Assembly (NCBI GenBank): GCA_002269645.1
Contig: NIVC01000511.1
Span: 404,023 to 468,022 of the forward strand
Length of the DNA stretch: 64,000 nt
Direction: 5' to 3'
Source of the DNA: Macrostomum lignano
Taxonomy: Eukaryota
Below, in pieces: positions 15,960 to 45,453 of the stretch. Position numbers and translations under genes: made by a program. The notes under the pieces were generated by a model. It was given only the letters and a program-made list of their open reading frames with translations, was not told the origin of the DNA and searched no databases. Each line of letters begins with the position of its first letter. The first letter of the stretch is position 1.

Positions 15960-17116
15960 TCAACCAGGACGCCTAGCTTTATTGAACAAGATATCAGAGT
16001 GCTACCTTGTTGTTGGAAGATTCTGCTTTTGCCGCATGCCGAAAACAGGGCAGCACCTTGTAGCCGAGGCTTTAAATACTACTAAGCTCATTTCTATGGC
16101 ACACGGTAGTACCGTGGCGTCGCCCATGCTTTAACTGCCTATCTGAGAACATACTGATGACGCCTATATCGACGGTTCAGCCAAGGAATTCCCTCAGCAG
16201 TTTGAAATCTGCTTGGATTTTCCAAGCCAAGCCCAGAGGGTACAACCTAGTAGCTAAAAATAGCAATGACAGCCGTGCGGGGGTGGGCGCTGGGTGGGTA
16301 AGGCGCTGGGTGGGTGAGGCGCTGGTACAGCGAACACTCTTGGGTCTATTTTTAGCATTTACGCAAATGACCTTTCCATCCAGAGGCAATCCCTCTGAAA
16401 ATAAGGCCGCTTGTAAAATGTATTTTGATTATAAGGTACAACCCTGATCACCAAAATGTCAAACTCATTGGTGACAACAGAGACAAAAATAAACCGGGAA
16501 AATGGTAATAATTTTCGTTTCACGCTCGCTTTTTGCTATTCATTTCTCGACTCGCTGTGCTCGACTGCTCAGAGCTTGTTACACTATATGGCCTGATGCA
16601 ACGGTTAATTCTATTGGTTCTTGATGAGTCTAGACTCTTCATTCCCAGCATGAAGCTTCTCGCTAAAAAATCTTTAGCGAGTAAGCAAGCGTCAGTTTTT
16701 AGGAACTAAAAAATTGACTATTGTTGTCTTCTGAACAGCAGCAAGCAATAATATACGCTGTCAGTAGGTCTTAAAACGGGAGCAGCGTCACGGGGCTTTG
16801 GCGCAAAAGCAGGCCACCTCGCAGACCAAATCTGCGACGCCGGCGTCAGCCAAATGCGCGCCTTTCCTCACCTGTTGAGTTGGCCGATCGCCTGGCCAAG
16901 GTAATCGGCTCGACCGGGTCTTTTTCTGGTCCCCTGCCTGTGCCCCCTGCTTCCACCGCCGTTGTCACCACTCAGATCAACCAGTGGATTGCATCTGAGA
17001 ATAGGGAGACGTCGCTAACGCCCTGACTGCCGGAAATCCCGCGCCGCTGTCCCCGCCCTCCCCCTCGCATGAACCTGATTGGGCTCAATTCCTCTCGGGT
17101 CAGGGAAACCGAGAAT

Positions 17117-17315: not shown

Positions 17316-17843
17316 CCTTAATTTGAAATCTTAAATCCCCTGCAATTTCTAGACTTTAAATGAAAACAGTAGTAAGACGTCTGATCGCAACGCATTTAAT
17401 ATGTATTTAAAAAGACTTCATTTCTTTTTAGATAGAAAAAAACTTCATCTCTAAACAAAATTTCATACACAACAAAACAAAGATTACCAAATTTACACGA
17501 ATAATGAAAAAATGAATAAAAATTACGAAAACAAACTGCGAAAACTTCGAAAAAGGTATGTTATACGATAACTGACAAAGTCTAAAGTCTAAGTCTAAAC
17601 TATTAATACTAACAAATCGACAAATGGGGTTTAAGCTACTAGGATTTTACTTTTGTCTGGGATAAACATGCAGATATGCGATTTTAAGAATGATAAATAC
17701 TAGAAAGAGAAATATAAACTTTAAGCTTAAAAAACTATTGTTGTGATAATCAAACGTGACAATTGTGATAATCAAATCAAATCGTTTTGCTTTTTTAACC
17801 AAACAAAACATTAATACGCGTCTAAGCAAACTTTATTTCTACC

Positions 17844-18839
17844 AATGACTCATTGTCCAAAGCTCTGTACTCTACGATCATTATGTTCACACCTATGACT
17901 CATTGTCCAGAGCTCTGTACCCTCTGATCATTATGTTCACACATATGACTCATTGTCCACAGCTCTGTACTCTATGATCATTATGTTCACACCTATGACT
18001 CATTGTCCAGAGTTCTGTACTCTATGATCATTATGTTCACACCTATGACTCATTGTCCAAAGCTCTGTACTCTCTGATCATTATGTTCACACCTATGACT
18101 CATTGTCCAAAGCTCTGTACTCTCTGATCATTATGTTCACACCTATGACTCATTGTCCAAAGCTCTGTACTCTCTGATCATTATGTTCACACCTATGACT
18201 CATTGTCCAAAGCTCTGTACTCTCTGATCATTATGTTCACACCTATGACTCATTGTCCAAAGCTCTGTACTCTACGATCATTATGTTCACACCTATGACT
18301 CATTGTCCAGAGCTCTGTACTCTCTCATCATTATGTTCACACATATGAATCATTGTCCACAGCTCTGTACTCTATGATCATTATGTTCACACCTATGACT
18401 CATTGTCCAGAGTTCTGTACTCTCTGATCATTATGTTCACACCTATGACTCATTGTCCAAAGCTCTGTACTCTCTGATCATTATGTTCACACCTATGACT
18501 CATTGTCCAAAGTTCTGTACTCTACGATCATTATGTTTACACCTATGACTCATTGTCCAAAGCTCTGTACTCTACGATCATTATGTTCACACCTATGACT
18601 CATTGTCCAGAGCTCTGTACTCTCTCATCATTATGTTCACACATATGAATCATTGTCCACAGCTCTGTACTCTATGATCATTATGTTCACACCTATGACT
18701 CATTGTCCAGAGTTCTGTACTCTACGATCATTATGTTCACACCTATGACTCATTGTCCAAAGCTCTGTACTCTCTGATCATTATGTTCACACCTATGACT
18801 CATTGTCCAAAGCTCTGTACTCTACGATCATTATCTTCA
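17844..18839. repeat. 50-bp minisatellite CTATGACTCATTGTCCAAAGCTCTGTACTCTCTGATCATTATGTTCACAC (~20 copies)
   Basis: Period 50 (ACCTATGACT at 18041 and 18091); the last copy overlaps the 3' end of the adjacent ORF. Confidence 0.97.
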
Positions 18840-20235
18840 CAGCTTCGCAGAGCTCGACTGCGCTGTCGGCCAGAGACCTGACGGAGTCCACCAAACCTGT
18901 CAGCTGGTTCCGGGCGTCCTCAGACACTTCAGCTTTCTGAGTGGAGAGCTTCAGCGCTTCTGAATTATCCGGGTACTGGTTCTGACGTGAGAGAGACAGT
19001 GCCGCATCCGCTTTGGAACTTGCATATGAAGTTCCTGCTTTAATACATTCAACCTGAAGTTTTCGATTTTTTTCAACCTTGGCCTGCCTGATACGGGCAT
19101 CTCCGTTTATTTCGTTTACCAACTTCTTCGCCTCGCCTTCAAATGTTTCGAGTCCGTCCCGGAAATTTCCCATTGCCTCCGACAGCCTGACCAAGTTGCT
19201 GCATATCTCTGATAGAATTACTTGCTTCTTTTCGTTTTTTGCTTTCCGTAGTTTCTTCAAGCTCTTCTTCACCTTCTTGACGAGAGTGTTCGATTTAAGA
19301 GTGGTGCTTGGTAGCAGCGGCACTCTCTCGGCCACAGTTGTCAGCGCAGATAGCTTGTCTTTGTACCCGTATTTTGGAGACTTTTTTGTTAGCAGCTTGA
19401 TTTTTTCCTGGATAGCTTTTGTCCGTTTTCGAAAATAGTCTGTGTCGGAGGACTTCAGAGTCGCCAGGGCGCAGGCCTCGCACACGAAGCAGGTTCCGAC
19501 AGAGTGAATCGAAGGTCGAGCCGCTGACAGTTGGCTATCTTGACTCTCTTGACCCCAACCAGAACAGATGCCACACTTCTTATTCCACATATTGGTTGTC
19601 CTCTTCGACCTTCGTACGATCAAATCCTGGTACAGCCCGGCAATTCGCTTGCTTCCGAAGTCCACACACCTGGCATCATCAAGCGTTCTCAGCGGTATCT
19701 TTTTGAAGTAGCCGACCATCTGACGAATGCTGCGGACAGGAATATCGATCTCAGATGCTTCCCTGCCTGCCTGCCCGGTGGAAGCACGCAGCTTTCTCAG
19801 TTCGTCCTCGCTTACCTTTGAGTTCTCGAGGCGAGAATCCAAGTCACCGATAGAGTCACAAATCTTAAGACAAACCTTGACGAGTTCATCCAGGACCGGA
19901 GCCAGCTTCTTGCCGCAGAATTTGAGCTGTGAAGCCTTTTTATTTACACCTGAACAGAGATCTTTTGCTTCTTTGTGGAGCGCTCTGTCCTTCCGTTCGG
20001 CAACTATTCGAAGTTCGAACAGCTTTTTGCATGTCGTCTGGGCAAGACAAATAAGGTCTACGAATGGAAGGATTTCCTTAACTTTAAAATCTTTTGAATT
20101 GATCTTTTTCGTCTCCGTGTCCACCGATTGAATCGAGCGCCACAATTCTTCATTCTTCAGGCATTTCACGAGCTTTAGCACGTTAGAAAGGCATTTGAAT
20201 TCGGCTGACTTTTGTTTAGAAACCAAGCCTCCCAT
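18793..20235 (-). CDS. Intronless orphan protein, 480 aa from the MGGLVSK start; N-myristoylation motif, Lys-rich helical regions, central Cys cluster
   Basis: Uninterrupted non-repetitive 1.48-kb ORF. GCCATGG context at 20235, MGxxxSK, CGIC...CFVCEAC. The ORF-track start at 20277 is a TTG. Confidence 0.75.
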   Translation of the reverse strand: MGGLVSKQKSAEFKCLSNVLKLVKCLKNEELWRSIQSVDTETKKINSKDFKVKEILPFVDLICLAQTTCKKLFELRIVAERKDRALHKEAKDLCSGVNKKASQLKFCGKKLAPVLDELVKVCLKICDSIGDLDSRLENSKVSEDELRKLRASTGQAGREASEIDIPVRSIRQMVGYFKKIPLRTLDDARCVDFGSKRIAGLYQDLIVRRSKRTTNMWNKKCGICSGWGQESQDSQLSAARPSIHSVGTCFVCEACALATLKSSDTDYFRKRTKAIQEKIKLLTKKSPKYGYKDKLSALTTVAERVPLLPSTTLKSNTLVKKVKKSLKKLRKAKNEKKQVILSEICSNLVRLSEAMGNFRDGLETFEGEAKKLVNEINGDARIRQAKVEKNRKLQVECIKAGTSYASSKADAALSLSRQNQYPDNSEALKLSTQKAEVSEDARNQLTGLVDSVRSLADSAVELCEAVKIMIVEYRALDNES

Positions 20236-20509
20236 GGCATCTGCGGCTGATACGAAAGAATCTACAAAATGGTGCAATACAAGTCGTACTTGGATGCTTC
20301 AGCTTCCGCGAGGGCATATACATAGCAGTGCGGATGGGGCTGGGTAACGGCCTGGCCAATGAAATGGAATGGAAGCATGGAAAGGAAAAATAAGGAACTA
20401 AGCTAGCTTAATTTCATCCCCATAACTTGCACAGCTAGACTCGCGCTCCAATACGGAACTAAAAAAGGGAAAGAAAAGTGGGGATAAAAGAGAGAAGAGA
20501 GAATGTAAA

Positions 20510-20565: not shown

Positions 20566-20928
20566 AAAAAGAGACACCAACCTTGAGCGGACGGTATTGC
20601 GAAGAGTCGAAATAACCCGAGGGCCGGATAGAGAGGCTGCGTGGGCCAGGCCACACGTACACCATGGGCCCTGGTGTACGTGTGACTTTTTGCGTGCCAG
20701 AGTTTAAATTAGAACAAGGAACTACAGCAAGCAGATCAAAATTATGGTGTACTTTGGTGAAAGAGGAAGTTCATAAACAAGCAGCAAACCCGGTAGTGCA
20801 CAGAAAGCTAGTCTGCATTTGGGTAGATATTTGTAGCAGTGTGGGCAGTGAGCACCGCCATCCAAATTGGATAAAAAGTTTAATATGCGACTTACGGAAA
20901 CTTACAATCCGGGACATTTCCTCATAAG

Positions 20929-23900
20929 GAGGGGAAGTGCCCGAGGGGAAGTGCCGGAGAGAAATTGCCGGAGGGGAAGTGCGGAGGAGAAATGCGGGAA
21001 GGGAAGTGCGGGTGGAGAAATGCGGGAGGGGAAGTGCGGGAGGGGAAGTGCCGGACGGGAAAGTACGGGAGGGGAAGTGCGGGAGGAGAAATGCGGGGGG
21101 GAAGTGCGGGAGGAGAAATGCGGGAGAGGAAGTGCGGGAGGGGAAGTGCGGGAGGAGAAGTGCGGGAGGGGAAGTGCGGGAGGAAAAGTGCGGGAGGGGA
21201 AGTGCCGGACGGGGAAGTGCAGGCGGGGAAGTGCGGAGGGGAAGTGCGGGAGGGAAAGTGCGGGAGAAGTGCGGGAGGGTAAGTGCGGGAGGAGAAGTGA
21301 GGGAGGGGAAGTGCCGGAGGGGAAGTGCGGAAGAGAAAGTGCGGGAGGGGAAGTGCGGGAGGGGAAGTGCGGGAGGGGAAGTGCCGGACGGGGAAGTACG
21401 GGAGAATTGCCGGAGGGGAAGTGCGGGAGGGGAAGTGCGGGAGAAGTGCGGGAGGGGAAGTGCGGGAGGGGAAGTGCGGGAGAAGTTCGGAAGGGAAAGT
21501 GCTGGAGGGGAAGTGCTGGAGGAGAAATGCGGGAGGGGAAGTGCGGGAGGAGAAATGCGGGAGGGGAAGTGCGGGAGGAGAAATGCGGGAGGGGAAGTGC
21601 GGGTGGAGAAATGCGGGAGGGGAAGTGCGGGAGGGGAAGTGCCGGACGGGAAAGTACGGGAGGGGAAGTGCGGGAGGAGAAATGCGGGACGGGAAGTGCG
21701 GGAGGAGAAATGCGGGAGAGGAAGTGCGGGAGGGGAAGTGCGGGAGGGAAAGTGCCGGAGGGGAAGTGCGGGAGGAGAAATGCGGGAGAGGAAGTGCGGG
21801 AGGGGAAGTGCGGAGGAGAAATGCGGGAAGGGAAGTGCGGGAGGGGAAGTGCGGGAGGGGAAGTGCGGAGGGAAAGTGCGGGAGGGGAAGTGCTGGAGGG
21901 GAAGTGCTGGAGGGGAAGTGCGAGAGGAGAAATGCGGGAGGGGAAGTGCGGGAGGAGAAATGCGGGAGGGGAAGTGCGGGAGGAGAAATGCGGGAGAGAA
22001 AGTGCGGGAGGGAAAGTCCTGGAGGGGAAGTGCGGGAGGGGAAGTGCCGGACGGGGAAGTACGGGAGAATTGCCGGAGGGGAAGTGCGGGAGAGGAAGTG
22101 CGGGAGAAGTGCGGGAGGGGAAGTGCCGGAGGGGAAGTGCGGGAGGGGAAGTGCGGGAGGAGAAGTGCGGGAGAGAAAGTGCGGGAGAGAAAGTGCGGGA
22201 GGGGAAGTGCCGGACGGGGAAGTACGGGAGGGGAAGTGCGGGAGAAGTGCGGGAGGGGAAGTGCCGGACGGGGAAGTACGGGAGGGGAAGTGCGGGAGAA
22301 GTGCGGGAGGGGAAGTGCGGGAGAAGTGCGGGAGGGGAAGTGCCGGAGGGAAAGTGCGGGAGGGGAAGTGCCGGAGGGGAAGTGCAGGAGAGAAAGTGCG
22401 GGAGGGGAAGTGCGGAGAAGTGAGGGAGGGGAAGTGCCGGAGGGGAAGTGCAGGAGAGAAAGTGCGGGAGGGAAAGTGCGGGAAAAGAAGTGCCGGACGG
22501 TGAAGTGAAAGAGGAGAAGTGCGGGAGGAGAAGTTCCGGAGGGGAAGTGCCGTAGGGGAAGTGAGGGAGGGGAAGTGCCGGAGGGGAAGTGCGGGAGGAG
22601 AAGTGCGGGAGGGGAAGTGCGGGAGGAGAAGTGCGGGAGGGGAAGTGCCGGACGGGGAAGTGCAGGCGGGGAAGTGCGGAGGGGAAGTGCGGGAGGGAAA
22701 GTGCGGGAGAAGTGCGGGAGGGTAAGTGCGGGAGGAGAAGTGAGGGAGGGGAAGTGCCGGAGGGGAAGTGCGGAAGAGAAAGTGCGGGAGGGGAAGTGCG
22801 GGAGGGGAAGTGCGGGAGGGGAAGTGCCGGACGGGGAAGTACGGGAGAATTGCCGGAGGGGAAGTGCGGGAGGGGAAGTGCGGGAGAAGTGCGGGAGGGG
22901 AAGTGCGGGAGGGGAAGTGCGGGAGAAGTTCGGAAGGGAAAGTGCTGGAGGGGAAGTGCGGGAGGGGAAGTGCGGAGGGAAAATGCGGGAGGGGAAGTGC
23001 TGGAGGGGAAGTGCTGGAGGGAAAGTGCGGGAGGAGAAATGCGGGAGAGAAAGTGCGGGAGGGAAAAAGCTGGAGGGGAAGTGCGGGAGGGGAAGTGCGG
23101 AGGGAAAGTGCGGGAGGGGAAGTGCTGGAGGGGAAGTGCGGGAGGAGAAATGCGGGAGGGGAAGTGCGGGAGGAGAAATGCGGGAGGGGAAGTGCGGGAG
23201 GAGAAATGCGGGAGGGGAAGTGCGGGTGGAGAAATGCGGGAGGGGAAGTGCGGGAGGGGAAGTGCCGGACGGGAAAGTACGGGAGGGGAAGTGCGGGAGG
23301 AGAAATGCGGGAGGGGAAGTGCGGGAGGAGAAATGCGGGAGAGGAAGTGCGGGAGGGGAAGTGCGGGAGGGAAAGTGCCGGAGGGGAAGTGCGGGAGGAG
23401 AAATGCGGGAGAGGAAGTGCGGGAGGGGAAGTGCGGAGGAGAAATGCGGGAAGGGAAGTGCGGGAGGGGAAGTGCGGGAGAGAAAGTGCGGGAGGGAAAG
23501 TCCTGGAGGGGAAGTGCGGGAGGGGAAGTGCCGGACGGGGAAGTACGGGAGAATTGTCGGAGGGGAAGTGCGGAGGGGAAGTGCGGGAGAGGAAGTGCGG
23601 GAGAAGTGCGGGAGGGGAAGTGCCGGAGGGGAAGTGCGGGAGGGGAAGTGCGGGAGGAGAAGTGCGGGAGAGAAAGTGCGGGAGAGAAAGTGCGGGAGGG
23701 GAAGTGCCGGACGGGGAAGTACGGGAGGGGAAGTGCGGGAGAAGTGCGGGAGGGGAAGTGCGGGAGGGGAAGTGCGGGAGGGGAAGTGCGGAGGGGAAGT
23801 GCGGGAGGGGAAGTGCGGGAGGAGAAGTGCGGAGGGGAAGTGCGGAGGGGAAGTGCGGGAGGGAAAGTGCGGGAGGAGAAGTGCGTGAGGGGAAGTGCGG

Positions 23901-24672
23901 GAGAAGTGCGGGAGCGGAAGTGCGGGAAAAGAAGTGCCGGACGGGGAAGTGCGGGAGGGGAAGTGCGGGAGGGGAAGCGCGGGAGGAGAAGTGAGGGAGG
24001 GGAAGTGCCGGAGGGGAAGTGCAGGAGAGAAAGTGCGGGAGGGGAAGTGCGGAGGGGAAGTGCGGGAGGGGAAGTGCCGGACGGGGAAGTACGGGAGGGG
24101 AAGTGCGGGAGGAGAAATGCGGGAGGGGAAGTGCGGGAGGAGAAATGCGAGAGAGAAAGTGCGGGAGGGAAAGTGCTGGAGGGAAAGTGCGTGAGGGGAA
24201 GTGCGGGAGAAGTGCGGGAGCGGAATTGTGGGAGGGGAAGTGCGGGAGGAGAAGTGAGGAAAGGGAAGTGCCGGACGGGGAAGTGCGGGAGGGGAAGTGC
24301 CGGACGGGGAAGTACGGGAGAATTGCGGGAGCGGAAGTGCGGGAGAAGTGCGGGAGGGGAAGTGCGGGAGGGGAAGTGCGGGAGGAGAAGTGAGGGAAGG
24401 GAAGTGCCGGAGGGGAAGTGCAGGAGAGAAAGTGCGGGAGGAGAAATGTGGGAGGGGAAGTGTGGGAGGAGAAATGCGGGAGGGGAAGTGCGGGAGGAGA
24501 AATGCGGGAGAGAAAGTGCGGGAGGGAAAGTGCTGGAGGGGAAGTGCAGGAGGAGAAGTGCGGAGGGGAAGTGCGGGAGGGGAAGTGCGGGAGGAGAAAT
24601 GCGGGAGGGGAAGTGCGGGAGGGGAAGTGCGGGAGGGGAAGTGCGGGAGGGAAATTGCCGGACGGGGAAGTG
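20929..24672. repeat. 3.7-kb G/purine-rich satellite, ~12-14 bp units GGGGAAGTGCGGGA and variants
   Basis: Very few T or C on the + strand; source of all the 400-1300 aa GGEVREGKC and PPALPLPHF ORFs. Confidence 0.98.
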
Positions 24673-25120
24673 CAAGGACCACTGTATATAGCAGGATGTA
24701 AAACTCAAAGATCGTGTAAATTTATAGAGGTCGATTTCCTGGAAAAAATACACTGCGGAGATAGGAGAAAACCATTTTTTCATTACAAAATGATATTATG
24801 AAAAATAAATATTGACAATCTGATCTGTTAAAATTATAGAAACCTAGTAAAAATGGAATAGAATAGAATAAGAATAAAAAATTAACATCGAATCCTAAGT
24901 TTCTTAACGAAAAGCTTTATAAATATCGATAGAGCAATAAAAAAGGCACAAAATATGAAAAGATGAACACTGAATCTGCCTCCTATCAAACGCAATAACG
25001 ATTTTTGTGCTGAAAAAATGAAAACTTCCTATCTCCGTAGTGTATTTTTTCGGGAAAAAGTGGCCTTCAAAACTTTTCTAAGAAACGAGGTTTCCAGTCC
25101 TTCTACTTAAGTCGTCCTTG
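24673..25120. mobile_element. MITE-like element with ~108-bp imperfect terminal inverted repeats
   Basis: Starts CAAGGAC and ends GTCCTTG. GGAAAAAATACACTGCGGAGATAGGA (left arm) pairs with TCCTATCTCCGTAGTGTATTTTTTCG (right arm). GTG flanks both ends (possible 3-bp TSD). Confidence 0.75.
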
Positions 25121-25511: not shown

Positions 25512-26546
25512 CCCCTAAGTTTAAACTACGCTCGTAGGTTTACTAGGTTTAAACACTACGCCTAAGCACAGACTATTTGGTTTGATGTATTAAAAGCATA
25601 GAGGACACTTGATGAAGGATAGGTGTATTATATGTGAGCAAGTTGGCTTGGTTTGGGTGTACAAAATAGCGGTTTGAAAGCGATTAAAACATTCAATGTT
25701 AGCCAATCGTTCAATGGGTGACACCAAAAAGGAATACAATTCTAGCATTGTCGGCCCAAGGCCGAAGTGTTGGCTACGACTTTGCCAATAAAAAACTCTA
25801 AAGAAACTGTTTGCTGCAAAAATCAAAGACAACAAATACGAGTTCTCCGTATTGGAGTAACACTTATTGCCATTATAGTTTATTAAAAGACTACGCTATA
25901 ACACATGCCAAAAGCAACAACTAACACAATTAGATTTGTCATCAAGTTCCGGTCTAAAGCAATTGCATCGAACAAGGGAGTGAGTCGAATCAGTCAGCTG
26001 TTGTGTGCAGCGGAACTGAAGCTGATATAAATGATATGCACACTGAACTGGAGAGTTGTACATGTAGCGGTGCCTAAAAGATCAGGCGTGCATTCTTAGC
26101 GGCGGTCTGCATTGAAAAAGATTTGTATGTTCACTGAAGCTACTAGTGAGTAGTTCATTACAGCTAGCTATCTATATAAACTGGCATATATTGGTTTGCC
26201 GACTTCGAAGGGTAGGCGGCTTGATTTAGCCTTGTAACTGGCAATTTTCCAACGATAGATCACGTAGAAAAACGATGTCATTAGTTCACTCTGAACTTTA
26301 CTAGCTCGTACATAATTGGTATTTTCGGATGAAAGCTTGAGCTTGCATTGCCTTCTGCAGGGAAAAATTCGTTACTGATGCTGCAATGGAAATGTCTTGC
26401 TGCCGGAACAGGCTCAAGCCGAGCCTGAGACTTAGTAGTATAGCCATCGATTCGTACTTTGCCGTGAACTCGTGGCTTGAACGCCTGAACTCCAAGGTTA
26501 CGAAACCCGGTTCCTAAGCAGTGAGGGGAATACACGGGTCAGTGCC

Positions 26547-29500
26547 TTACTGCCTGCTGCTACTAGTAGAAGCAGATGAAGGCGTGCCATGACCCGGAAA
26601 AGGCAGCGGTCGCTTTACAGACGCTTTTTTGTGTTGTTGCTTCAGCTGTTGCTGCTGTGGTTGTTGTTGTTGTTGCTGCTGTTGCTGCTGCTGCTGCTGC
26701 TGCAGTAGTTCAACTCGCTTGAACTCCTTCAACAGGTCAATAGCCTCGCCGTCAACATTTCGGTCGTCCAGATTGTCAGCCGCGTCTGAGGTGCCAGCGG
26801 CCGCAGTGGCGTAATTAAATACTGGCTGAATGCGGAACTCGACGGGCTGGCTGGATGACGGGCCGGGAGTGCGGTAGGTGTACGACAGCGGCGCGCCGCC
26901 GCCAGCAGCACCGGAGTTGTGACTGCGCTGAGGCTCTGCAGCAGCCGTCGGTACCGCCACGGTGGTTGGGCCATTGCTCAGGCTGGGTTCCCGAGGATTC
27001 TGGTAGAGATAGAACTGGTTTTGAGGTTGCAGATGCGGCAGAGGCTGCTGACTGTGGGGAGGCACAGGGGGCACTGGGTGCACGGGAAATTCCGTCATTG
27101 TGGACGCGTCAAAATGCGGTGCGGGTGTCCGAATTGATGATGTCAGGCGACTTCCCAGCTCCTGAAGTTTTGATGGGACAAAATTTGCCGGGCTGAACCG
27201 CTAAGTCGACAAGGACCCCGGGTGGTAAGAGAATTAAACGCTACAAATCTACGGGAGTGCATTTGAAGGTGAAATTTTTATTTAATATGCTTCTTCAACG
27301 AGACTGGCGTTTTTAAAGTTTTCAGCACCAACTTTCTGGAACTCCGAAGTCATCAGATTTTAACAACTGTCAATCTCTAGCGCTAAAAACTGAAACGTTC
27401 CTACGATATCCTGTGAAGCAAATTTTTGTTGAGCAAAATGAGGACTTTAAATAAGCACCTATTAACTTAAGTGTTGCGTTCTCTTACGACTAGGGAACCG
27501 GTGATCACTAGGGAACCGGTGATCACTAGGGAACCGGTGATCACTAGGGAACCGGTGATCACTAGGGAACCGGTGATCACTAGGGAACCGGTGATCACTA
27601 GGGAACCGGTGATCACTAGGGAACCGGTGATCACTAGGGAACCGGTGATCACTAGGGAACCGGTGATCACTAGGGAACCGGTGATCACTAGGGAACCGGT
27701 GATCACTAGGGAACCGGTGATCACTAGGGAACCGGTGATCACTGGACACTTGCTTTCACTCACCTCCTCATCAGAAGAGCGCTTTCCCGCAGGGACAGTC
27801 CAATGCTTCCTATCCAGTCTTCGACGTCTGAAATGTTTTTTTCAAAACAAAACTTAACAGTTAGAATGTTCAAAAGCTTTGTCTTTGCCTCAAACTACTT
27901 TATAACAGAAGTTTAAACTGAAACAAACAGGTCATCACGACATCGATTCTCTGAGAAACAATGTGACAGGACAATACAGCTGTGTCGATTTATGACCTGA
28001 CGAACCTAAAAGAGCGCGTTCTGATTTTGAAATGATTTTTTTAAATACTTAATAAACAGGACTCACATGTCCGCAACCATACAACAGATAGCCAGGAGCA
28101 CAACAAACAGGGCTATCAAGGCGAGACCGGCCACAAGGGTCGTGGTGGAGAGAGTCGTCTCGGACACGCCTGCCACTGCTAAATTTCGAATTAGGCCTGC
28201 AATATTTTGATGAGGAAGAGAGGCTGATGCAGGAAGAAGAGGCAGCTAAAGACAGAGCAGGCGGCGACGGTGGTAAAAATAAAAATAAAGGCAAATGGAG
28301 TACAACAATTGCAACCAGGCGCATGTCGGTTTGGTGGACAAGGTGACACAACATTATTGTAAAGCATCAAGCCATTGCAGGTCGGTAACAATGCAATATA
28401 CTACTGAAAGCGGCTTACAAGCTGAGCAAACAAAACCAATGCTAAAGAACAACTATATTGGAATATTTACCACTGAACCGTAAACGGGTCTGAATGTACG
28501 CAACATTCTACTTATTAGTAGTGCAATTCCGTTGATCCCTACGGAAGGCTTTCTAAAGTAAATATGAAATTTATTCAGCACTTTTCTAACCTAGCCAAGT
28601 ACCAGGAGAGCAGCAGGATGGAGCACAGCACCGCTGCTACGATGGCTACCGCAACTGCGGTCAACAGTCGATCGACTCGACGGTGCAAATGCTGCTCAAT
28701 GTAGGCTGCAATTCGGTTGAGATTGAGCGATGGAGGCTAATTACAGGATATAGTGGACTTCCGGGATCTTCCTAAACCTGACCTTGCAAAAGCATTGGCA
28801 GCTCAGAGTTTACTCTCCTTAGTCTCTGAGCTGATCTGTCCAAGGGGTCCGGATGCCTTGGTAGCTGAGCTTCATCAGCCACACAGCTTCCAATATCCTA
28901 CTGCCAGCCCTCCCTGTTGCCTGTCCGAATTCTGATCAAGTTAGATGAAGAGGAGAGTCTGCAATGCCTCTATTGCTTTACTCAAACCAAACACAATTTG
29001 CTCTGCAGGCTGGAGACTGGAGCTGGTGTTGATCACGCGAGCGATTCGCCGCAATTTTGGAATTCTCTTTTGAAGTGCGGAGCCACTTTGCTCTTGCTTT
29101 GATGAGAATGCTTTGCTTAAGCTGTAAATTTAGTTTTATACGCACTTAACGACTGTCTTGCTGTCTAACCAATTTGTTTGCAAGTCTTAGCAACACAGGC
29201 ATTACTATAAACAGAATTCAAAGTTAAAAATTGGTTGCTAGCGTACTCTGCAAATCCACGCAGTCAGTGTCGTTGAGGTTTACAGCCGATATGCACCTGG
29301 TTAAAAAATGGGCAATCGGTTTCAAGCAAATGAATTAGTGCCACTCATCAACAATGGTTATAACGCGATATTGTTATTAATAGCTGAATAATCAACAAAG
29401 CATCCGTTGCTAAAATCAACACTGTAAAGATATTAGCAAAGGCATTAGACCATTCTCGGTTTTATAAGTGAGCTAAATCAAATGCAGCACTGGTTAATAT

Positions 29501-32500
29501 TGAGATTGAATTGAAAATCTGATTGACATAAATATTATTAATTAATCTTAGAAAGCTGTGCAAGAAAAATTTACTCTGCCTGATCTGCTCCCGGTACATG
29601 TATTCAATGTTGATATTCTCGCAGAAGAACCCCATGTACTCTTCCGGACATCTGGAATTTTTATTAGTAAATTAATTGTACAGTTTGTGCAGTAAAACTA
29701 ATGGACATAGAATTCTGTTCCCAGCTATTGCTATAATATATACGGTAATCCGTGCATTGTGCATTCCTAAATAGTACATGAATCTACATCCCTTGTGCAC
29801 AAGGATGCAGCTGATCGAAACGGGCATCAAGCTGTCATTACTTATCAGATCAAAGTGAATAATTCTAATTGAGCTTGTTTGATTTGATCAGAAAGCAGGT
29901 TTGACTCACTGGCAGGATGGCTTATTGGTAATTCGACTGATGACGCAGGTGCCTCCGTTGAGACAATAGGTGACATTCTTGTAGTTGCACAGGTAGTTCT
30001 GCGGCTGGGGCGCTGGAATATTTTCATCGATTTGTTTTTCATCTGTTTAGAGCTGCACTCGGCCTCCGCCCAGTAAATTTCAGCAAGCCCAATTCTAATT
30101 AACTATTTATGCTGGACGTTCAAAGCGCATACCAAAGCAGTCTTGCCAACTGTGTCAGCTGTCTGCGAATGCTTTGAGCCACTGTGCCGGCTCTCCCCAC
30201 CCACCCTGTCTGCTCTGCGTAGGTCAGGGCTGACTTTCACAATGGCATCTAAAAGAATACCGCCCCCAGATAGTTACTGGCCAACACTAACAGACAGACA
30301 GGTTGCAATAAAGACGCTTGCAGCTCCTAAAATAGAGCTCTGAACAGAACAACACTTACCCACAGTGGTGGATGTTTGCTGACCCATCGAGCTGCTCAAT
30401 TCTTCCGCTGTAACGTTGAAATGAGACAAGTTGAGTTATTGTTGGAATGACATACGTTTGTCTACGCTAGACTGTTGCATTGCCGATGCTCATTCCATAT
30501 ATGGGACCAAGGGTGTAACAAAAACAAGTCAATACGATACTTGGTGTGCTACAAGATTCCTTAAATACTTTTGGCGCTTAGATTAGAAAATCAGCAACTT
30601 ATGGCATTCCTCTGAAAGTCCCCCAGGTCGGTTCCACGAGCGAACTGAAGGGCCAGGGTGTGAGCATGCCTGGATACATACGAGCGTATTTGCGTGCGTC
30701 TAAAATACTGGGCACTAAACGGGTTTATCTGCGATTTTGGAACTACGGTCTACGTATCTTAAGTTTCAAGCAGTGGAGATGGGTTGTTTAAAGTTTAACT
30801 GGGCAAACAAAATCGCTTACCAGTGATAGAGTGATAGAATGAAAATTTTGAATTCGCGGTTTTCAGAGACTAACAATGGAGTTACGAGTTGGCCAGCGCC
30901 TCTAGTTGTTCGCTTTATATACAGTAGCAAAACTGCTCCGACGAAAATGCCCAGAGATTGGCTCAAGCGTTCGCAGGGTGAGAGCGGGGTAAGGGCTTTG
31001 AGCGGGGTAGATGCATTTACGATGCTTACTCACAAAAAAGTTTGTGGTACTCGATATACCCCGCATTCCTTTTCGTTCGAGATGCAACAAGACTTTATTA
31101 GCATGCTCGCCTCCCCCTCAATCAGCCTGACTACTGCAAGAACAATACAAGGCAAATAAGGTTAAGAAAATGATTGAGTTCAAATAGCAGTCAGCTCACC
31201 AGCCAGCACGATGCTGCTGCTGATGGAGCCCTGCAGGTTGCGGAACACGCAGGTGTAATTTCCAGCGTCATCTGGCGATGCCCTTCTTAGCACGAGACGA
31301 GACGTGACTATTCCTTTCCTGTTAATGTTGAAGAAAATACTTGAGGTGAATTCATGCGAGCTATCGAGGAGTTGGGCTAACGGCAGGACTTCAATCTTCT
31401 ATCTCATATCCCCCCCAGGCACAGTGAAGTGTACATTCCTAACGATAAATAAAGTTAGGGCCGCTGTACACCCCTGTGTGAGTGTGTGCCTGTGGGTATG
31501 ACTGCGTACGTATCTGCGCGCTTGTGTGCCTGCTCAGGGGAGTCGGCGGAATGGCCAGTAATGCCTCTCACCGGTTGTGCGACATGTCGCTTGCGCCAGG
31601 GTGTACAAATCCCCCTGCCTCTAATAAAAAGCTCATTTGCCCTTGTCTCTGTTCAGGGGGGGGGGGTGCAGATGCGTCGTAAAAATAGGAGGGGTAGAGT
31701 GCGCGACTGAGGAAAGAGGTGAGACTGAAGAGCCAATCAGAAGGCCGCGCGAGGGAGAGAGACAGAAAAAACAAGACTGAACCATACGGTAGACCAGAGA
31801 GGGAGAGAGATAAGAAAAACAAGACTGAACTATACGGTAGACCAGAGAGGGAGAGAGACAGGAAAAACAAGACTGAACTATACGGTAGACCAGAGAGGGA
31901 GAGAGACAAGAAAAACAAGACTGAACTATACGGTAGACCAGAGAGGGAGAGAGACAGGAAAACAAGACTGAACTATACGGTAGACCAGAGAGGGAGAGAG
32001 ACAGGAAAAACAAGACTGAACTACAGACCAGAGAGGGAGAGTGATAAGAATAACAAGACTGAACTACAGACCAGAGAGGGAGAGAGATAAGAATAACAAG
32101 ACTGAACTACAGACCAGAGAGGGAGAGAGATAAGAATAACAAGACTGAACTACAGACCAGAGAGGGAGAGTGATAAGAATAACAAGACTGAACTACAGAC
32201 CAGAGAGGGAGAGAGATAAGAATAACAAGACTGAACTACAGACCAGAGAGGGAGAGTGATAAGAATAACAAGACTGAACTACAGACCAGAGAGGGAGAGA
32301 GATAAGAAAAACAAGACTGAACTATACGGTAGACCAGAGAGGGAGAGAGACAGGAAAACAAGACTGAACTATACGGTAGACCAGAGAGGGAGAGAGACAA
32401 GAAAAACAAGACTGAACTATACGGTAGACCAGAGAGGGAGAGAGACAGGAAAACAAGACTGAACTATACGGTAGACCAGAGAGGGAGAGAGACAGGAAAA

Positions 32501-35500
32501 ACAAGACTGAACTACAGACCAGAGAGGGAGAGTGATAAGAATAACAAGACTGAACTACAGACCAGAGAGGGAGAGAGATAAGAATAACAAGACTGAACTA
32601 CAGACCAGAGAGGGAGAGAGATAAGAATAACAAGACTGAACTACAGACCAGAGAGGGAGAGTGATAAGAATAACAAGACTGAACTACAGACCAGAGAGGG
32701 AGAGTGATAAGAATAACAAGACTGAACTACAGACCAGAGAGGGAGAGTGATAAGAATAACAAGACTGAACTACAGACCAGAGAGGGAGAGAGATAAGAAT
32801 AACAAGACTGAACTACAGACCAGAGAGGGAGAGTGATAGGAATAACAAGACTGAACTACAGACCAGAGAGGGAGAGAGATAAGAATAACAAGACTGAACT
32901 ACAGACCAGAGAGGGAGAGAGATAAGAATAACAAGACTGAACTACAGACCAGAGAGGGAGAGAGATAAGAATAACAAGACTGAACTACAGACCAGAGAGG
33001 GAGAGAGATAAGAATAACAAGACTGAACTACAGACCAGAGAGGGAGAGAGATAAGAATAACAAGACTGAACTACAGACCAGAGAGGGAGAGTGATAGGAA
33101 CAACAAGACTGAGCTACAGACCAGAGAGGGAGAGACACTTGTAATAAATTAAACAGAGACGAGGGCAGATGATTTGCAGAAATGACCAAGTCATGCCCGA
33201 TTTCGCTAGCCCCCAAGCGCGCACTTGATCACAGGGTGTACAGCAGTGGTCGTGCACGAAATCAAATGCAGCGACTGTAGAGCGATAATCGGATGCATCA
33301 TCAATGCCTCTCGCCGGTTGTATGACAATGTCGCCTAAAGTGCGCCAGGGTGCTCACAGCCCCTGCCTCTAAGAAACTCACCTGGTCTTGAACTGCGCCA
33401 CCCTGCCCCGGCCCAGTTTAACTGGCTCGCCGTCGCGCAGCCACAGCGGCCTCGGACGGGGCAGCCCGTTCGCTCGGCACACCAGCCGCAGTCGCAGCCG
33501 CATCCCACGGCTGCCACCGCGCCTGCGGCTGATCCTTCGGATTCGTTTGCGCATCTCCTTCACCAGTTGCGGGGACGCGCTGGAAAAGGAAAATTGGCAA
33601 TTTGCATTTTTTTAAAAACTTCCTTGTAACAAACGTTTTGGTTAAGGAAAAGAGTACGATGTGCGAGTATTCTATAGATAAAGAGCTTCAAGTGCGACAA
33701 TCAAAACTTAAACAATTAGTACCGTCGGAGCGTTCCTTGATTTTTGTGTCTTCATTCTTAACCTACACGCGTAATTTAGATCAGTTCGCTCTAAAATTGA
33801 CGGCGGATGATCCCATTCATCGAGACCAATATTCACATCACGTTGTTAAAAATTCACTATGATTAATAACTAAAACTTAGGATCGGAATACAGTGAGTCT
33901 AGGACCCTGAGGAGTTATTTGTCTAATAATAAGAAGGTGAATTCGTGTACTTAAATGCGCAGAAGAAGTGGCTTAAGCAATCATGGAATAAATGTTTGTA
34001 TAAATATATAAATATAATTGTGTTACATTACGAGCGTAAATACGACCATCAGCGTCCATACAGCTGAGGTAAGATTTGGTTATGAAATTGGAAGATACAA
34101 AATGTGCTCAAAATTACGTCTCTATGGTTTCACTGCACTCGACACTTTCAACTGTGCATTTCGTTGCCTGCAGGGATTGCAAATTGCAACTGATATTGCT
34201 AGTAGTAGGCCCGTTCGAGCATACACTGTACTCCTACACTGCCGCACAGCAAGGTGAGGGGTGAGTGACACGCCGCCTCAATGCTTGCTAATTGTGTTAG
34301 GGCAGCCTTTCGAAGGCCTGTTAAGAAACTTCTCTTTAATTCTTTAACACAGGAACAGCCTGTTGGTAAAAGGGGACCGACTTGATCGAACGGCTTACCG
34401 CATATTGTAGTTTCAACACCTGCAGCGATTGATAGTCGGCGAATAAGACTGGGGTTTAATTTGTTGGAACTGATAAATGACTGAAACAAAAATCTCTTTC
34501 GAATTGCACCAGCACTTTGCTTATCGGCAGACAAAAAGCTATTTTGTTTGCCAGTAAGCATGCAGAAGCCTCTAAGGCATTCTCCGATAAAACAGTCGGT
34601 ATCCACCCTTTAGAAAGTCTTATAAACCAAACTAAAATACCTCAGCAGATCGCCTGATAACGCTTAGGAACCTAAGGGGTGCGCTTAAGGGATACTAAGA
34701 AATATTTATTCTGCCTAAAATTATTCTGCTCGGTAAAGTTTGTGTTATGGAAAGGGGAGCACATCGCGCTTTTTGAGTCCAGCTCCAAGGCATACCATTG
34801 TGACCCTGTTCTTTTCTGCTGTTGCTTGCTGATCTCTGTTGTCTGAGTTCGCAACTGTCTGCACTATTGTTTTTTTATTTTCGAATCCAAAGCGGCAAAT
34901 TTTTGTTCATATCTGTTCGAACATCAGTATACCTACGGGAGCTGAGTGGAGAAGTTATAGTGCAGCTTCAGGCCCGCGGAAAGCCTGGCTCTCGGGATAA
35001 ACAACCGTACAGAATTTGGTGGGACATCCGGGCCTGCGCAGCTGTCAGTGAGCCGCCCAGCCGCCCGCTCCAAATCCTCGCGACGTAAATCTTCATTTGA
35101 TTCCCTCTCGAGCGGATAAGTAAGGTCGAAAATCTTCCACGGTTTCCTCATCTGGCTGTTTTCTGATTTTTTATCCCTCCCTTTCTTCTTACTATCATTC
35201 AATCCCCTAAGTCCTCTTCTTGAACTCAAAGCTTTTCCAATTGCCTGCGCTATTTTTCTTTAAAGCAAGTTTAATTGGAAACTCAACCGCAAAACCAAAT
35301 TTGTTTGCCCCCCCCCCGAGAGAATCTCGGGTTTCTTCGAGAAGCCAGTCCAGGCTTTCTGAGTCCACTTTCGACCATCTTTCGTTTCTTTTCGTTGCTT
35401 CAGTCTTTAGTCCCACTTTTCGAGCTCTACTAAGCCTGTGCCGAAGTGTCAGTACCACTGGGTTGAAAGCTAGCTGGTAATCTTGCAATAATCTGTGTCA

Positions 35501-38500
35501 GAACAGACATCCTTTAATGGATTTAAAAAACTCGTCGCAAAAAAGTGTTGATAAGCTTGAAGACAAATTTCTGACAAGTTGAGCATCTTAGCTCTCAACA
35601 CTTTCTGACGTAATTCAAAGGAACCAGTCTTGCATTCTTTGAGGAAATTTGAAGGAATTAAAAGCAAAAGTTTAGTGAAAAATTGACAGCTCAGTAAGAT
35701 TTGCATATTGCGAGCTTGCAGCCATCAGTTTCAATATGAGTTGAACTTGCTGGGCGTGGCGTCTACAGTCTTCACAGTCATTTTCTAAGAACTCATTCTT
35801 CAGCTTTATGACTCTTTTGAAGCCCCGGGTGAATCGTCGGTTTGTACAGTCAGCTGCCCAGATGATGATTTCCGGTAGCCTTGGCAAGTAATTAGGAGAA
35901 CAAATCCAGTACAATGCAATTTCCCTGAAAAGAATCCTTATCTCTACGTCTTTTAAGATGAACTACTTCGGACAGGAAAAGACAGCCTTGCCAGGTAGGT
36001 GAATAGATAATTACATTATAATAACCCCATCTTGCAGAAAATGATGATTGCATGCCTGCATGCTTTTGGCCGTGGGAGACCGGAGTAAGCTAGGGAAGAA
36101 ATATAGAAGCAAAGCAGCGGGAAAAGAAAGAAGTTACTTGTTGTTGCCAAAAATTTTGGCAGAAATATCGTGAAACTATAAAGAGTTGCCGAGCTAACAC
36201 AGAGAGCCATTCTTGATTGCTTCCAAAGCTGAAGACAAAATCCCACGTAGGAGCGGAGCGTACTTATCGACCATAGACTGTACAAAGCCGATGCTCAGAA
36301 ATATAAGACATTTCACACTTAGAAACTGCATGTATCAAATAAGCAAGACAACATCGCTCAGTCACCAGACTCAGTTGCCGTCGTCGATTCACAACTCCGT
36401 AACAGCCATGCCATATAGCCCTTACGTCTGAACAACAACAGCCATGCCACTAAAGTGCGCGGTAGCTATTGCAAGAACTGCGTTTCTGATGCATCTGTAT
36501 CCTTCTTTCGTCTGCCTTTCAAGGACGTCGATCAGTGGCGTAGCCAGGATTTCCTTCTGGGGGGGGGGGTCACAGTCACAGGCTCACAGCGGCAACCGGG
36601 GGCAGGGGGTGCTAGGCCTCTGCAACGGGGGAGGGGGGTGCTGAAAATTTGGCCTGGGTCAGCCGGCTGGGGGGGGGGTCATGACCCCCATGATCCCCCC
36701 TTGGCTACGCCCCTGACGTCGATCGTCTGAGAGAGTGGCGAGCACGGGTGCCACTAAGATCTGCTGGAGATGTCAAATGGATGCGTATTTGTGAGTTTCA
36801 TTTCTCCATTGACGACTTTGTTCAGCAGAAGACAAGAAAAAAACTGAAATCTGATGCCGTGCCAAGTGTCAGAATTGCGACTCCTGAGCAGCATGTGCCG
36901 GTATCTGCACCTTCACTCTGCCTGTTTATTACTTATGCTTTTTGCTTTTCCCACTGCTACACCTTCACTCTGCCTGTTTATTACTTATGCTTTTTGCTTT
37001 TCCCACTGCTACACCTTCACTCTGCCTGTTTATTACTTTAGCTTTTTGCTTTTCCCACTGCTGCACCTTCACTCTGCCTGTTTATTACTTTTGTTTTTTG
37101 CTTTTTCCACTGCTGCACCTTCACTCTGCCTGTTTATTACTTATGCTTTTTGCTTTTCCCACTGCTACACCTTCACTCTGCCTGTTTATTACTTATGCTT
37201 TTTGCTTTTCCCACTGCTACACCTTCACTCTGCATGTTTATTACTTATGCTTTTTGCTTTTCCCACTGCTACACCTTCACTCTGCATGTTTATTACTTAT
37301 GCTTTTTGCTTTTCCCACTGCTACACCTTCACTCTGCATGTTTATTACTTATGCTTTTTGCTTTTCCCACTGCTGCACCTTCACTCTGCCTGTTTATTAC
37401 TTATGCTTTTTGCTTTTCCCACTGCTACACCTTCACTCTGCCTGTTTATTACTTATGCTTTTTGCTTTTCCCACTGCTACACCTTCACTCTGCCTGTTTA
37501 TTACTTATGCTTTTTGCTTTTCCCACTGCTACACCTTCACTCTGCCTGTTTATTACTTATGCTTTTTGCTTTTCCCACTGCTACACCTTCACTCTGCCTG
37601 TTTATTACTTATGCTTTTTGCTTTTCCCACTGCTACACCTTCACTCTGCATGTTTATTACTTATGCTTTTTGCTTTTCCCACTGCTACACCTTCACTCTG
37701 CCTGTTTATTACTTATGCTTTTTGCTTTTCCCACTGCTACACCTTCACTCTGCATGTTTATTACTTATGCTTTTTGCTTTTCCCACTGCTACACCTTCAC
37801 TCTGCCTGTTTATTACTTATGCTTTTTGCTTTTCCCACTGCTACACCTTCACTCTGCATGTTTATTACTTATGCTTTTTGCTTTTCCCACTGCTACACCT
37901 TCACTCTGCATGTTTATTACTTTAGCTTTTTGCTTTTCCCACTGCTGCACCTTCACTCTGCCTGTTTATTACTTATGCTTTTTGCTTTTCCCACTGCTAC
38001 ACCTTCACTCTGCCTGTTTATTACTTATGCTTTTTGCTTTTCCCACTGCTACACCTTCACTCTGCATGTTTATTACTTTTGTTTTTTGCTTTTTCCACTG
38101 CTGCACCTTCACTCTGCCTGTTTATCACTTATGTTTTTGTCTTTCCGACTCTGCTGCAAGAATCCTGCTCAACTTCTTTTCTCCGTACACAATGCAATCA
38201 TCGTACGTACGGTTACAGTATAGATACAGAAATAAAGTCTTGAGGACGTTTTAAGCATACATAGTATTCGTCCAAGCTACATTAGTTACTTGTATTTTTC
38301 TCATGCACTCTATGTATATTTCTGAGCATTGGCTTTGTACACCATTCTAGCCACAACTTGTGCCATAGACTAAAAAGCTTGGTGATCGGAGGGGGTGGGT
38401 GGATTCTAAAAATCGGCTTCAGATTTTCATCCTTATTGGCACTCTATACTAGGCGACCTCAATACTCTTTGGCTTAATCTAATTTCTTGATTCAAACTTG

Positions 38501-44254: not shown

Positions 44255-45453
44255 ATGATGAAAGGCTCCAACGACAGAAAAAACATTTATTTATATGTGC
44301 CAAACCTAATAGGTAAGTGAAAAATCCTTTTCAAACCTGCAATTGTAGTAGCATTGTTTTATTTTTGTTTGAAAGTTCATGTTTGATTCCAGGTGTAGTT
44401 TGAATTACTTCCATATAATTGGATTCTGTAAGAGTTAAAGAGGGGCATAAATTGATTTGTAATTATATGATATGGGGAATGCTAAAAGAATTTTCTAGGA
44501 TGATTTTTAGAATCGTTTTTAACCTAAAGAACCTTCTGGAGAAAGCCATTTTCCTCTAGATATCAGGAAGCCTCATAGAAAGTAATGAAGAAAGCTATCT
44601 CACGTAGGAAATGCTCGGCGAGAAAAATTCCTGCTGGGAAATCTTTGCTCGAAATCTGTCTTAATGGGAAATCTCCAAATAAAAAATATCGTACAGGGAA
44701 ATCTGACACTGGAAAATCTCGGGTAAATCTTCCACAGGAAAATCTCCCAAAAGCTACCGCTCCCACTCCAGCTGTATTTGCGGTAAAGCAATTTGCTTGC
44801 AGAGCCCCCAACCGCCTGGAGCCGGCCCTTCCCGCAGATTATGCTCGCCTGCTCTTCCTGCTCGCCGGCCTGCTCCTCCTGCCGCTCAGCGAGGCCGCCT
44901 TCCCTCTGTGCTACGTCGCCTCCTCCCTGCTTGACCTGGTGGACGGCTGGGCCGCTCGCCGCCTGAAGCAAACCTCCAGCCTCGGCGCCTGGCTGGACGT
45001 CATCTGCGACAACCTCGGCCGCGCTTGCCTCTGGCACCTCAGCGGCAGCCGGCTCGGCCCGCTGTTTGTCAGCGTCGAGTGGCTCGCCTTTGCCGCCAAT
45101 CAGCGCCGCTCCGTCGCCACTGCGTCGGCCGCCGCCGCCTGGAAGTCGAACGTGCAACGCCAAATGCCCGGCTGGCTCAGCCGGCTATTCGACAACGGAT
45201 TCTACAATCCGATGGGTGCGCTGGCGATGGCCGGCCTGTTCGGCCTGCCCATGGCGCACTTCCTGCTGGCCAGGGCGATGCTGCCCGGCTTCATCCTGGG
45301 CTGCCCGGCGCTGCAGTGGGCGGCGCTGACGGCGCTCTACACTGGACGGCTCTTGGCTCTGGCTGCCGAGGTGCGAATCTATATACAAATTTTGCGTTGT
45401 TTGTCTGTCTGTCTCTTTCTTAGTGTCTGCCTGCCTGTCTATCTGTCTGTCTA

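Follow-up and report, generated by a model that had tools for sequence, protein, structure and literature searches.

The stretch of Macrostomum lignano DNA analysed here (contig NIVC01000511.1, positions 404,023 to 468,022; the whole 64,000 nucleotides (nt) are called the window below) carries on its minus strand a predicted neuregulin-type gene for a ligand of the epidermal growth factor (EGF) receptor (EGFR). The predicted product has a signal peptide, an N-terminal domain, an immunoglobulin (Ig) domain, an EGF domain, a stalk, a single transmembrane (TM) helix, and a cytoplasmic tail. Two exons of this gene, called A and B here, each encode a stalk and a TM helix. We propose that A and B are used in a mutually exclusive way, B being the default and A a regulated choice, and give this reading a probability of about 70%, with the reading frames as the grounds for exclusivity. 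Exon A is unannotated. Judged by its conservation in two paralogues, it is a genuine coding exon that has been kept since before the paralogues split, and by the same comparison it is better conserved than B. A-type exons are found in three paralogues and B-type exons in two.

In the proposed scheme, the EGF exon would be joined to either A or B and then to a shared stop-transfer exon, C, so that A and B would each supply their own stalk and TM helix. B, which has strong splice signals, would be the default, and A, which has weaker ones, would probably be the regulated alternative. The two isoforms would share the receptor-binding ectodomain and the tail and would differ in the segment that is read by sheddases or intramembrane proteases and that governs trafficking. 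The exons concerned are as follows (in window coordinates; a slash marks an exon boundary here and below).

29575-29651, minus strand: EGF exon 2, with the C5-C6 loop and the start of the stalk, CPEEYMGFFCENINIEYMYREQIRQ; 77 nt, phase 2>1; the annotated form.
28591-28705, minus strand: exon A, with a short basic stalk and a TM helix, LLTAVAVAIVAAVLCSILLLSWYL; 115 nt, phase 1>2; unannotated.
28067-28196, minus strand: exon B, with a longer stalk rich in Ser, Thr, and Ala and a TM helix, LVAGLALIALFVVLLAICCMVA; 130 nt, phase 1>2.
27764-27827, minus strand: exon C, with the stop-transfer and juxtamembrane segment, (R/I)RRRLDRKHWTVPAGKRSSDEE; 64 nt, phase 2>0.

Both A and B are entered in phase 1 from EGF exon 2, which ends at 29575. 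Exon A is preceded by ttgcAG and followed by GTtaga, and its phase-1 reading is (T)YIEQHLHRRVDRLLTAVAVAIVAAVLCSILLLSWYLA(R); exon B lies between ttgcAG and GTgagt and reads (S)LIRNLAVAGVSETTLSTTTLVAGLALIALFVVLLAICCMVAD(I). The coordinates, the AG/GT ends, the phase 1>2 of both exons, and their in-frame joins to exon C had been given in a first-pass annotation of this DNA, and every one of these statements was reproduced. Membrane insertion is predicted for both helices (Hessa sums of -3.4 kcal/mol for A and -5.2 kcal/mol for B), and RRRLDRK follows them. The donor of A (TAG/GTTAGA) is the weakest in the gene, while B has the consensus GTGAGT and a long, strong polypyrimidine tract. The ATTGCAG acceptor context shared by A and B is no better a match than those of the gene's other acceptor pairs. 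B is found in all three public protein models (P0001, P0002, and P0003) and A in none; as suggested in the first-pass annotation, the A isoform is undescribed at the annotation level, being absent from every public protein model searched. A second in-frame acceptor (catcAG/CC) exists 27 nt upstream of the B acceptor (28197-28223, minus strand) and would lengthen the B stalk by nine residues, SLPHQNIAG.

Within the intron between EGF exon 2 and exon C, A and B are the only phase-compatible open AG..GT segments that have a hydrophobic stretch of TM grade. Such segments exist at nine loci across both strands of the window, or about 0.1 expected per 1.75 kb. A chance origin of A and B is therefore unlikely, since two such loci are found in this intron, and the conservation in paralogues described below removes the remaining doubt. 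The GC content of exon A is 0.57 (0.68 at third positions), like that of the coding exons, while it is 0.33-0.41 in the flanking introns. The synonymous codon choice of A is closer to that of the gene's other exons than B's is. The codon usage of A is strongly coding when compared with a null of intron composition (0 of 5000), but only in the top 9% when compared with an empirical null of stop-free windows. Codon usage was thus not decisive, and the evidence from the window alone left the reality of A undecided, until the comparison of paralogues superseded this test. An origin of the A region from a transposon or repeat was considered and rejected, as no second copy is found in the window.

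The paralogues were found when P0001 was used as the HMMER query against 1.84 billion representative proteins, which gave two true relatives amid many Ig-repeat proteins. P0012 (561 amino acids, 45% identical) is full length and is encoded at NIVC01002603.1 (locus L001). P0031 (353 amino acids, 41% identical) stops at the EGF domain and is encoded at NIVC01001050.1 (locus L002). Both loci are in assembly GCA_002269645.1 (Mlig_3_7 of M. lignano). This assembly has at least three diverged loci of the neuregulin type, with identities of 41-45%, whereas Table 2 of a published survey lists a single one for the species (PMC4914847).

Exons of the A type are found at both paralogous loci. When the A peptide is compared with L001 by tblastn, it matches 19667-19780 (E 4e-8; the next best match has E 0.24). 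The corresponding exon, A', occupies 19665-19779 (115 nt, acAG/.../GTttgt, phase 1>2), encodes AYLSSRSVRQTDRLLTSVAIGTACCVIGALFLLAWYLA(R), and lies between the EGF exon and the B-type exon B'. In L002 the match is 19579-19692 (E 1.6e-10), and the exon, A'', occupies 19577-19691 (115 nt, tcAG/.../GTaaga, phase 1>2), encodes YVDRRVNRAIDRVLTATTIGVAATVIIGIVVLSWYLA, and is flanked by the EGF exon and the C-type exon. The three A-type exons have equal lengths and phases and are 44-49% identical in amino acids. The Smith-Waterman score of A against A' is 91, while composition-matched shuffles score 23+-4.7 (z = 14) and none of 5000 shuffles reaches 91; the scores of A against B' and of B against A' are at shuffle level. 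Invariant among the A-type exons are Y2, R9, D12, R13, L15, T16, V26, L33, and W35-Y-L-A-R39. They are grouped at the ends of the helix, with R..DR.LT just before it and WYLAR at its exit. In the three pairs of exons, nucleotide identity at the first, second, and third codon positions is 0.46/0.65/0.35, 0.49/0.78/0.30, and 0.43/0.68/0.38. This order (2>1>3) is the pattern expected from protein-coding constraint. The introns surrounding the A-type exons, on the other hand, cannot be aligned between paralogues, except for a single block, against L002, in the region of a candidate alternative EGF exon (EGF2alt, described below). Because the length, phases, peptide, and codon pattern of the A-type exons have been conserved while the introns diverged, A is best read as a genuine coding exon.

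B also has a counterpart, in L001. Exon B' (19993-20128, 136 nt) is the B-type exon used by the annotated protein P0012. Its helix (...IVLLSVCLM...) resembles that of B (...VVLLAICCM...), and B scores 41 against the B-type segment of P0012 (Smith-Waterman; null 27+-5, p 0.014). Conservation had been put forward in the first-pass annotation as a check of these exons, and it holds for A in three paralogues and for B in two. Exon C has counterparts in L001 (C', 20337-20397) and in L002 (C'', starting at about 20638). No B-type exon is present in L002 throughout the stretch from the EGF exons to the C-type exon. A'' fits C'' in frame there (cag/A CGC CGA CGA TTG GAT...), and the homologous tail exon follows. 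Since L002 has no B-type exon, splicing of A'' to C'' is the only TM path found at that locus.

The reading frames suggest how A and B are used. When A is joined to C, the product reads ...WYLARRRRLD..., and when B is joined to C, it reads ...MVADIRRRLD...; both continue into the terminal exon in frame. When A and B are both included in the window gene, the frame is shifted, the shifted frame of B is open, and translation would end within exon C, at a stop 46 nt short of the last junction. When neither is included, the frame is also shifted and a short soluble product is predicted. The same is true of L001, where A' with C' and B' with C' give the full tail, while A' with B', or neither, leads to a premature stop in C'. 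In the window both exon lengths (115 nt and 130 nt) are 1 mod 3, so that inclusion of both or neither breaks the frame and productive mRNAs would hold exactly one of them. The earlier claim that one of the two at a time gives a full-length protein is borne out by this logic in the window and in L001. Two genes have long retained both exons, which cannot be read together in frame, and this is hard to explain unless each exon is used without the other in some transcripts. For the window gene we infer that A is spliced to C with B skipped. The first-pass annotation had also pointed to a product with A, the shifted B, and no C. Its arithmetic is correct, as skipping C restores the frame after A and B, and the shifted B is open in L001 as well. 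The shifted peptides have no visible similarity, however, and the product itself is unsupported. The junctions predicted for these combinations are as follows.

EGF exon 2 to A: GAGCAGATCAGGCAGA/CCTACATTGAGCAGCATT
A to C: CTCCTGGTACTTGGCTAG/ACGTCGAAGACTGGATAGG
EGF exon 2 to B: GAGCAGATCAGGCAGA/GCCTAATTCGAAATTTAGC
B to C: TGTATGGTTGCGGACAT/ACGTCGAAGACTGGATAGG
A to B: CTCCTGGTACTTGGCTAG/GCCTAATTCGAAATTTAGC

The remaining exons of the gene complete the predicted architecture.

39445-40012, minus strand: exon 1, with the start codon, signal peptide, and N-terminal domain; it ends GCC TGC C/GTGAGT, phase 1.
33382-33579, minus strand: Ig exon 1.
31200-31318, minus strand: Ig exon 2, which contains AGNYTCVFRNLQGS.
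29910-30012, minus strand: EGF exon 1, with cysteines C1-C4, CNYKNVTYCLNGGTCVISRITNKPSC; it ends in phase 2.
26547-27161, minus strand: terminal coding exon, with the cytoplasmic tail, poly-Q, and the stop.

Exon 1 was found by tblastn with residues 1-182 of P0001 (97.8% identity) and has a weak Pfam match to NRG2_N (E 0.0027), under the cut-off. The Ig domain is clear in Pfam, where both I-set (E 3.3e-9 to 4.5e-9) and Ig_3 (E 1.3e-9) pass the curated cut-offs. The EGF domain scores 17.7-17.9 bits in Pfam, under the cut-off of 21.5. Its six-cysteine spacing, read directly, is CX7CX5CX10CXCX8C, which is the pattern of EGFR ligands. The neuregulin-type architecture of such ligands (Ig, EGF, and TM) was defined by Barberan et al. 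(PMC4914847). In the window gene the I-set domain is N-terminal to the EGF domain and the TM helix is C-terminal to it. No Pfam match to the vertebrate-type Neuregulin intracellular domain is found at E <= 1; this domain is described for vertebrate NRG1 and NRG2 only, and the invertebrate "NRG-type" class does not need it (PMC4914847). Close relatives in the databases are limited to three M. lignano UniRef proteins (P0001, P0002, and P0003), one of which differs from the window by merely two residues across the aligned stretches. An exact look-up of P0001 and P0002 in the gene collection gave no record, and a metagenome scan for relatives of the gene found none. By its Ig domain in Pfam, its EGF cysteine spacing, its TM helix, and its three M. 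lignano relatives, the gene can be classed as a neuregulin-type EGFR-ligand gene of a free-living flatworm, in agreement with the neuregulin-like identity first claimed for it.

Around exon C a repeat is also seen. A perfect 18-nt tandem repeat (27489-27743; 14.2 copies, 100% identical) starts about 20 nt past the exon C donor, and P0003 reads through this donor into the repeat (VSESKCPVITGSL) before splicing onward.

Several observations weigh against mutually exclusive use of A and B. Their peptides, described in the first-pass annotation as unrelated hydrophobic helices, do lack detectable similarity (scores are at shuffle level). Most mutually exclusive exon pairs are homologous, having arisen by tandem exon duplication, which is typical and not obligatory. 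No A-type peptide is found in any predicted protein of a collection of 5.8 billion clusters, a weak negative given that the index also missed the real paralogue P0012. At the start of Ig exon 1 (about 33565-33579, minus strand), a run of C has four C in the window, while the public models imply five and read ACPRPPQLVKEM. With four, exon 1 joins Ig exon 1 out of frame in the window and runs into a stop; this one-base offset could be a homopolymer assembly error or could mean a defective gene copy.

The question of what could enforce exclusivity belongs here as well. Frame incompatibility of A and B is found both in the window and in L001. Steric hindrance of splicing is ruled out because the intron between A and B is 394 nt long. 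A stem of 17-18 base pairs can form between 29303-29286, in the intron before A, and 28329-28312, in the intron before B, and would loop A out. This stem only marginally beats shuffles (p about 0.05 for the best ungapped stem) and has no counterpart in L001, and RNAduplex run on the whole introns was uninformative. A hairpin able to mask the B acceptor is seen in the fold and was rejected, as the region is no stabler than shuffles (z = -0.4). An RNA-structure mechanism for the choice between A and B is thus unsupported, and no enforcer beyond frame incompatibility was found. The last of the opposing points is a feature that allows A another use.

28570-28577, minus strand: read-through stop TGA (28577-28575) and AATAAA hexamer (28575-28570), just past the exon A donor.

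Since the hexamer overlaps the stop that would be read after A, A might be mainly an alternative last exon. Its donor would then be bypassed, translation would stop after five codons (...SWYLARLEKC, then the stop), and polyadenylation at the overlapping AATAAA would yield a nearly tail-less anchored ligand. The choice would be between splicing and polyadenylation and not between one exon and another. Of the alternatives this survives best, although we consider it unlikely. Just three AATAAA hexamers exist on the minus strand in 26000-30500, so that one would lie within 30 nt by chance with a probability of about 3%, and the weak donor of A in the window favours such use. The paralogues point both ways. 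Read-through of A'' in L002 stops at once (AGG TAA), with an AATAAA 70 nt downstream, but in L001 there is no stop for 43 codons past A' and no AATAAA. All three paralogues agree in the 115-nt length, the position of the AG/GT donor, and the phase, which fits a spliced internal exon, and the one path with a TM helix that was found to lead to the conserved tail in L002 goes from A'' to C''. The conserved length, donor position, and phase argue for splicing as the main use of A; A could also serve as an alternative last exon.

It is also conceivable, if improbable, that A is included together with B. The frameshift would then yield a ligand that is anchored by helix A and has a short tail of unrelated sequence, or a transcript that is lost to nonsense-mediated decay, and A would be a tail-switch or a down-regulating exon. 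The strong splice signals of B mean that B might not be skipped when A is used. Both the window and L001 have the shifted frame of B open, and the stop in the window, 46 nt upstream of the last junction, is near the usual limit for decay. The peptides read from this frame in the two genes, however, show no visible similarity, while in A the whole stalk and helix, up to the final WYLAR that abuts the conserved RRRLD of C, is conserved as protein, and in L002 A'' joins C'' directly without any exon of the B type. Least probable of the three is that A is a disused relic in the window gene, B having taken over and A-type exons being functional only in other paralogues such as L002: all public models of the window gene use B, the A donor is the weakest in the gene, and the codon-usage score of A reaches just the top 9% of the empirical null, but A and A' are both in genes that have a B-type exon, in both the frame is still open and the two splice sites are still present, their lengths are identical, and they share 44% identity although the introns around them diverged past alignment, and an unused exon is not expected to survive so long in two lineages.

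Besides the mutually exclusive pair of A and B, the gene may have a second alternative exon, in the EGF domain.

29247-29296, minus strand: EGF2alt, a candidate alternative EGF exon 2; 50 nt, phase 2>1, aaccAG/.../GTacgc, CISAVNLNDTDCVDLQ; unannotated.

It is contained in the only intronic block that can be aligned between the window and L002 (29301-29213 against 16851-16940, blastn E 7e-5). The counterpart in L002 (16856-16905, 50 nt) reads CLIVSNETAENCVEFQ. A weaker candidate in L001 (18923-18987, 65 nt), CLPDTANGSTAATPRDCAEFL, was not recovered by nucleotide similarity. All three versions have AG/GT ends, two cysteines, and an N-x-S/T glycosylation sequon, and they follow the pattern C-x10-15-C-[VA]-[DE]-[LF]-[QL]. 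Identity between the window and L002 at the three codon positions is 0.62/0.56/0.31, the third positions being the least conserved. EGF2alt is able only to replace EGF exon 2 and not to follow it, so that its use would alter the last disulfide loop of the EGF domain; the predicted junction with EGF exon 1 is AAGCCATCCTGCCA/GTGCATATCGGCTGTAAACC. The standard EGF exon 2 of L002 no longer has a donor (TAG/AC) and ends in a stop, where the gene call halts. The A-type, C-type, and tail exons of L002 are for this reason outside any called gene. Lacking a functional EGF exon 2 donor, L002 may depend on the alternative exon to reach the TM helix. Tentatively, and with more doubt than confidence, one may picture a two-cluster splicing system dating from an early neuregulin, with an alpha/beta-like choice of EGF2 or EGF2alt and a choice of A or B, perhaps coordinated. 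If this is true, one gene would produce ligands that differ both in the receptor-binding surface and in the releasing protease or sorting site. For each of several paralogues, two or more conserved coding exons are absent from current gene models.

Elsewhere in the window, the neuregulin gene is separated from its neighbour by a tandem array at 20928-24673, which has about 272 copies of a 14-nt unit and is strongly skewed in both GC and AT. Further tandem arrays are found at 31751-33135, 36908-38150, and 17841-18841, with units including 43 nt (in the intron between Ig exons 1 and 2), 52 nt, and 50 nt. An intron-less open reading frame (ORF) of 480 codons at 18796-20235, minus strand (MGGLVSKQKSAEF...), matches nothing in Pfam, and an exact look-up in the gene collection gave no record for it. 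Two other long ORFs were assessed by eye: the one at 58714-62279, minus strand, looks like a SANT-domain co-repressor-like protein, and the one at 44585-45400, plus strand, like a CDP-alcohol phosphatidyltransferase-like protein.

In membrane-tethered EGFR ligands, the stalk and the TM helix determine which protease (ADAM, BACE, or rhomboid) releases the ligand and where the precursor goes. In the EGFR ligands known to us, splicing varies short linker pieces only, and we know of no described EGFR ligand that exchanges its entire membrane anchor by splicing. A ligand that apparently exchanges its whole stalk and helix while its ectodomain and tail stay constant would offer a natural experiment in which the control of signalling by the anchor can be seen. 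M. lignano is able to regenerate, and RNA interference and transgenesis are possible in this flatworm, so that work on single isoforms would be feasible.

Three known systems can be compared with the window gene. NRG1 has the same order of parts: Ig, EGF, stalk, one TM helix, and tail. Alternative exons directly after the EGF core of NRG1 set its susceptibility to sheddases, and alpha, beta, and gamma alternatives of the C-terminal part of its EGF domain exist (PMC7297728). EGF2alt is at a position equivalent to that of the alpha/beta exons. While short linker exons vary before one shared TM exon in NRG1 (TMc sequence, PMC3995064), the stalk and the entire TM helix would be exchanged in the window gene. 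Neither A nor B is significantly similar to NRG1 TMc (p 0.09-0.8), and A was rejected as an orthologue of that helix. NRG1 also differs in having the Neuregulin intracellular domain, which Pfam does not detect in the window gene.

In C. elegans, LIN-3 is made in S, L, and XL splice variants, and the variant sets the dependence on the rhomboid ROM-1 (PMC519001). This is a functional outcome of the kind proposed here. LIN-3 is unlike the window gene in that its variants are insertions of 15 or 41 residues that arise from an extra exon or from the use of an alternative donor, in that the TM exon is shared, and in that it has no Ig domain.

Drosophila Dscam1 has two mutually exclusive exons, 17.1 and 17.2, which encode different TM domains, and the choice between them steers the protein to dendrites or axons (PMC2566808; PMC7430681). 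The likeness lies in two exons that each carry a different TM segment of a single-pass protein. Dscam1 is an unrelated gene for a receptor or adhesion molecule, and not for a shed growth-factor precursor. By analogy with NRG1, LIN-3, and Dscam1, and by analogy only, we infer that the likeliest consequence of an A/B swap would be a change in the manner or site of EGF-domain release or in the sorting of the precursor. A switch of the shedding route between ADAM and rhomboid may be involved, and the data here favour neither route. The proposed A/B system would join two known kinds of splicing, the juxtamembrane variation of EGFR ligands and the mutually exclusive TM exons of the Dscam1 kind.

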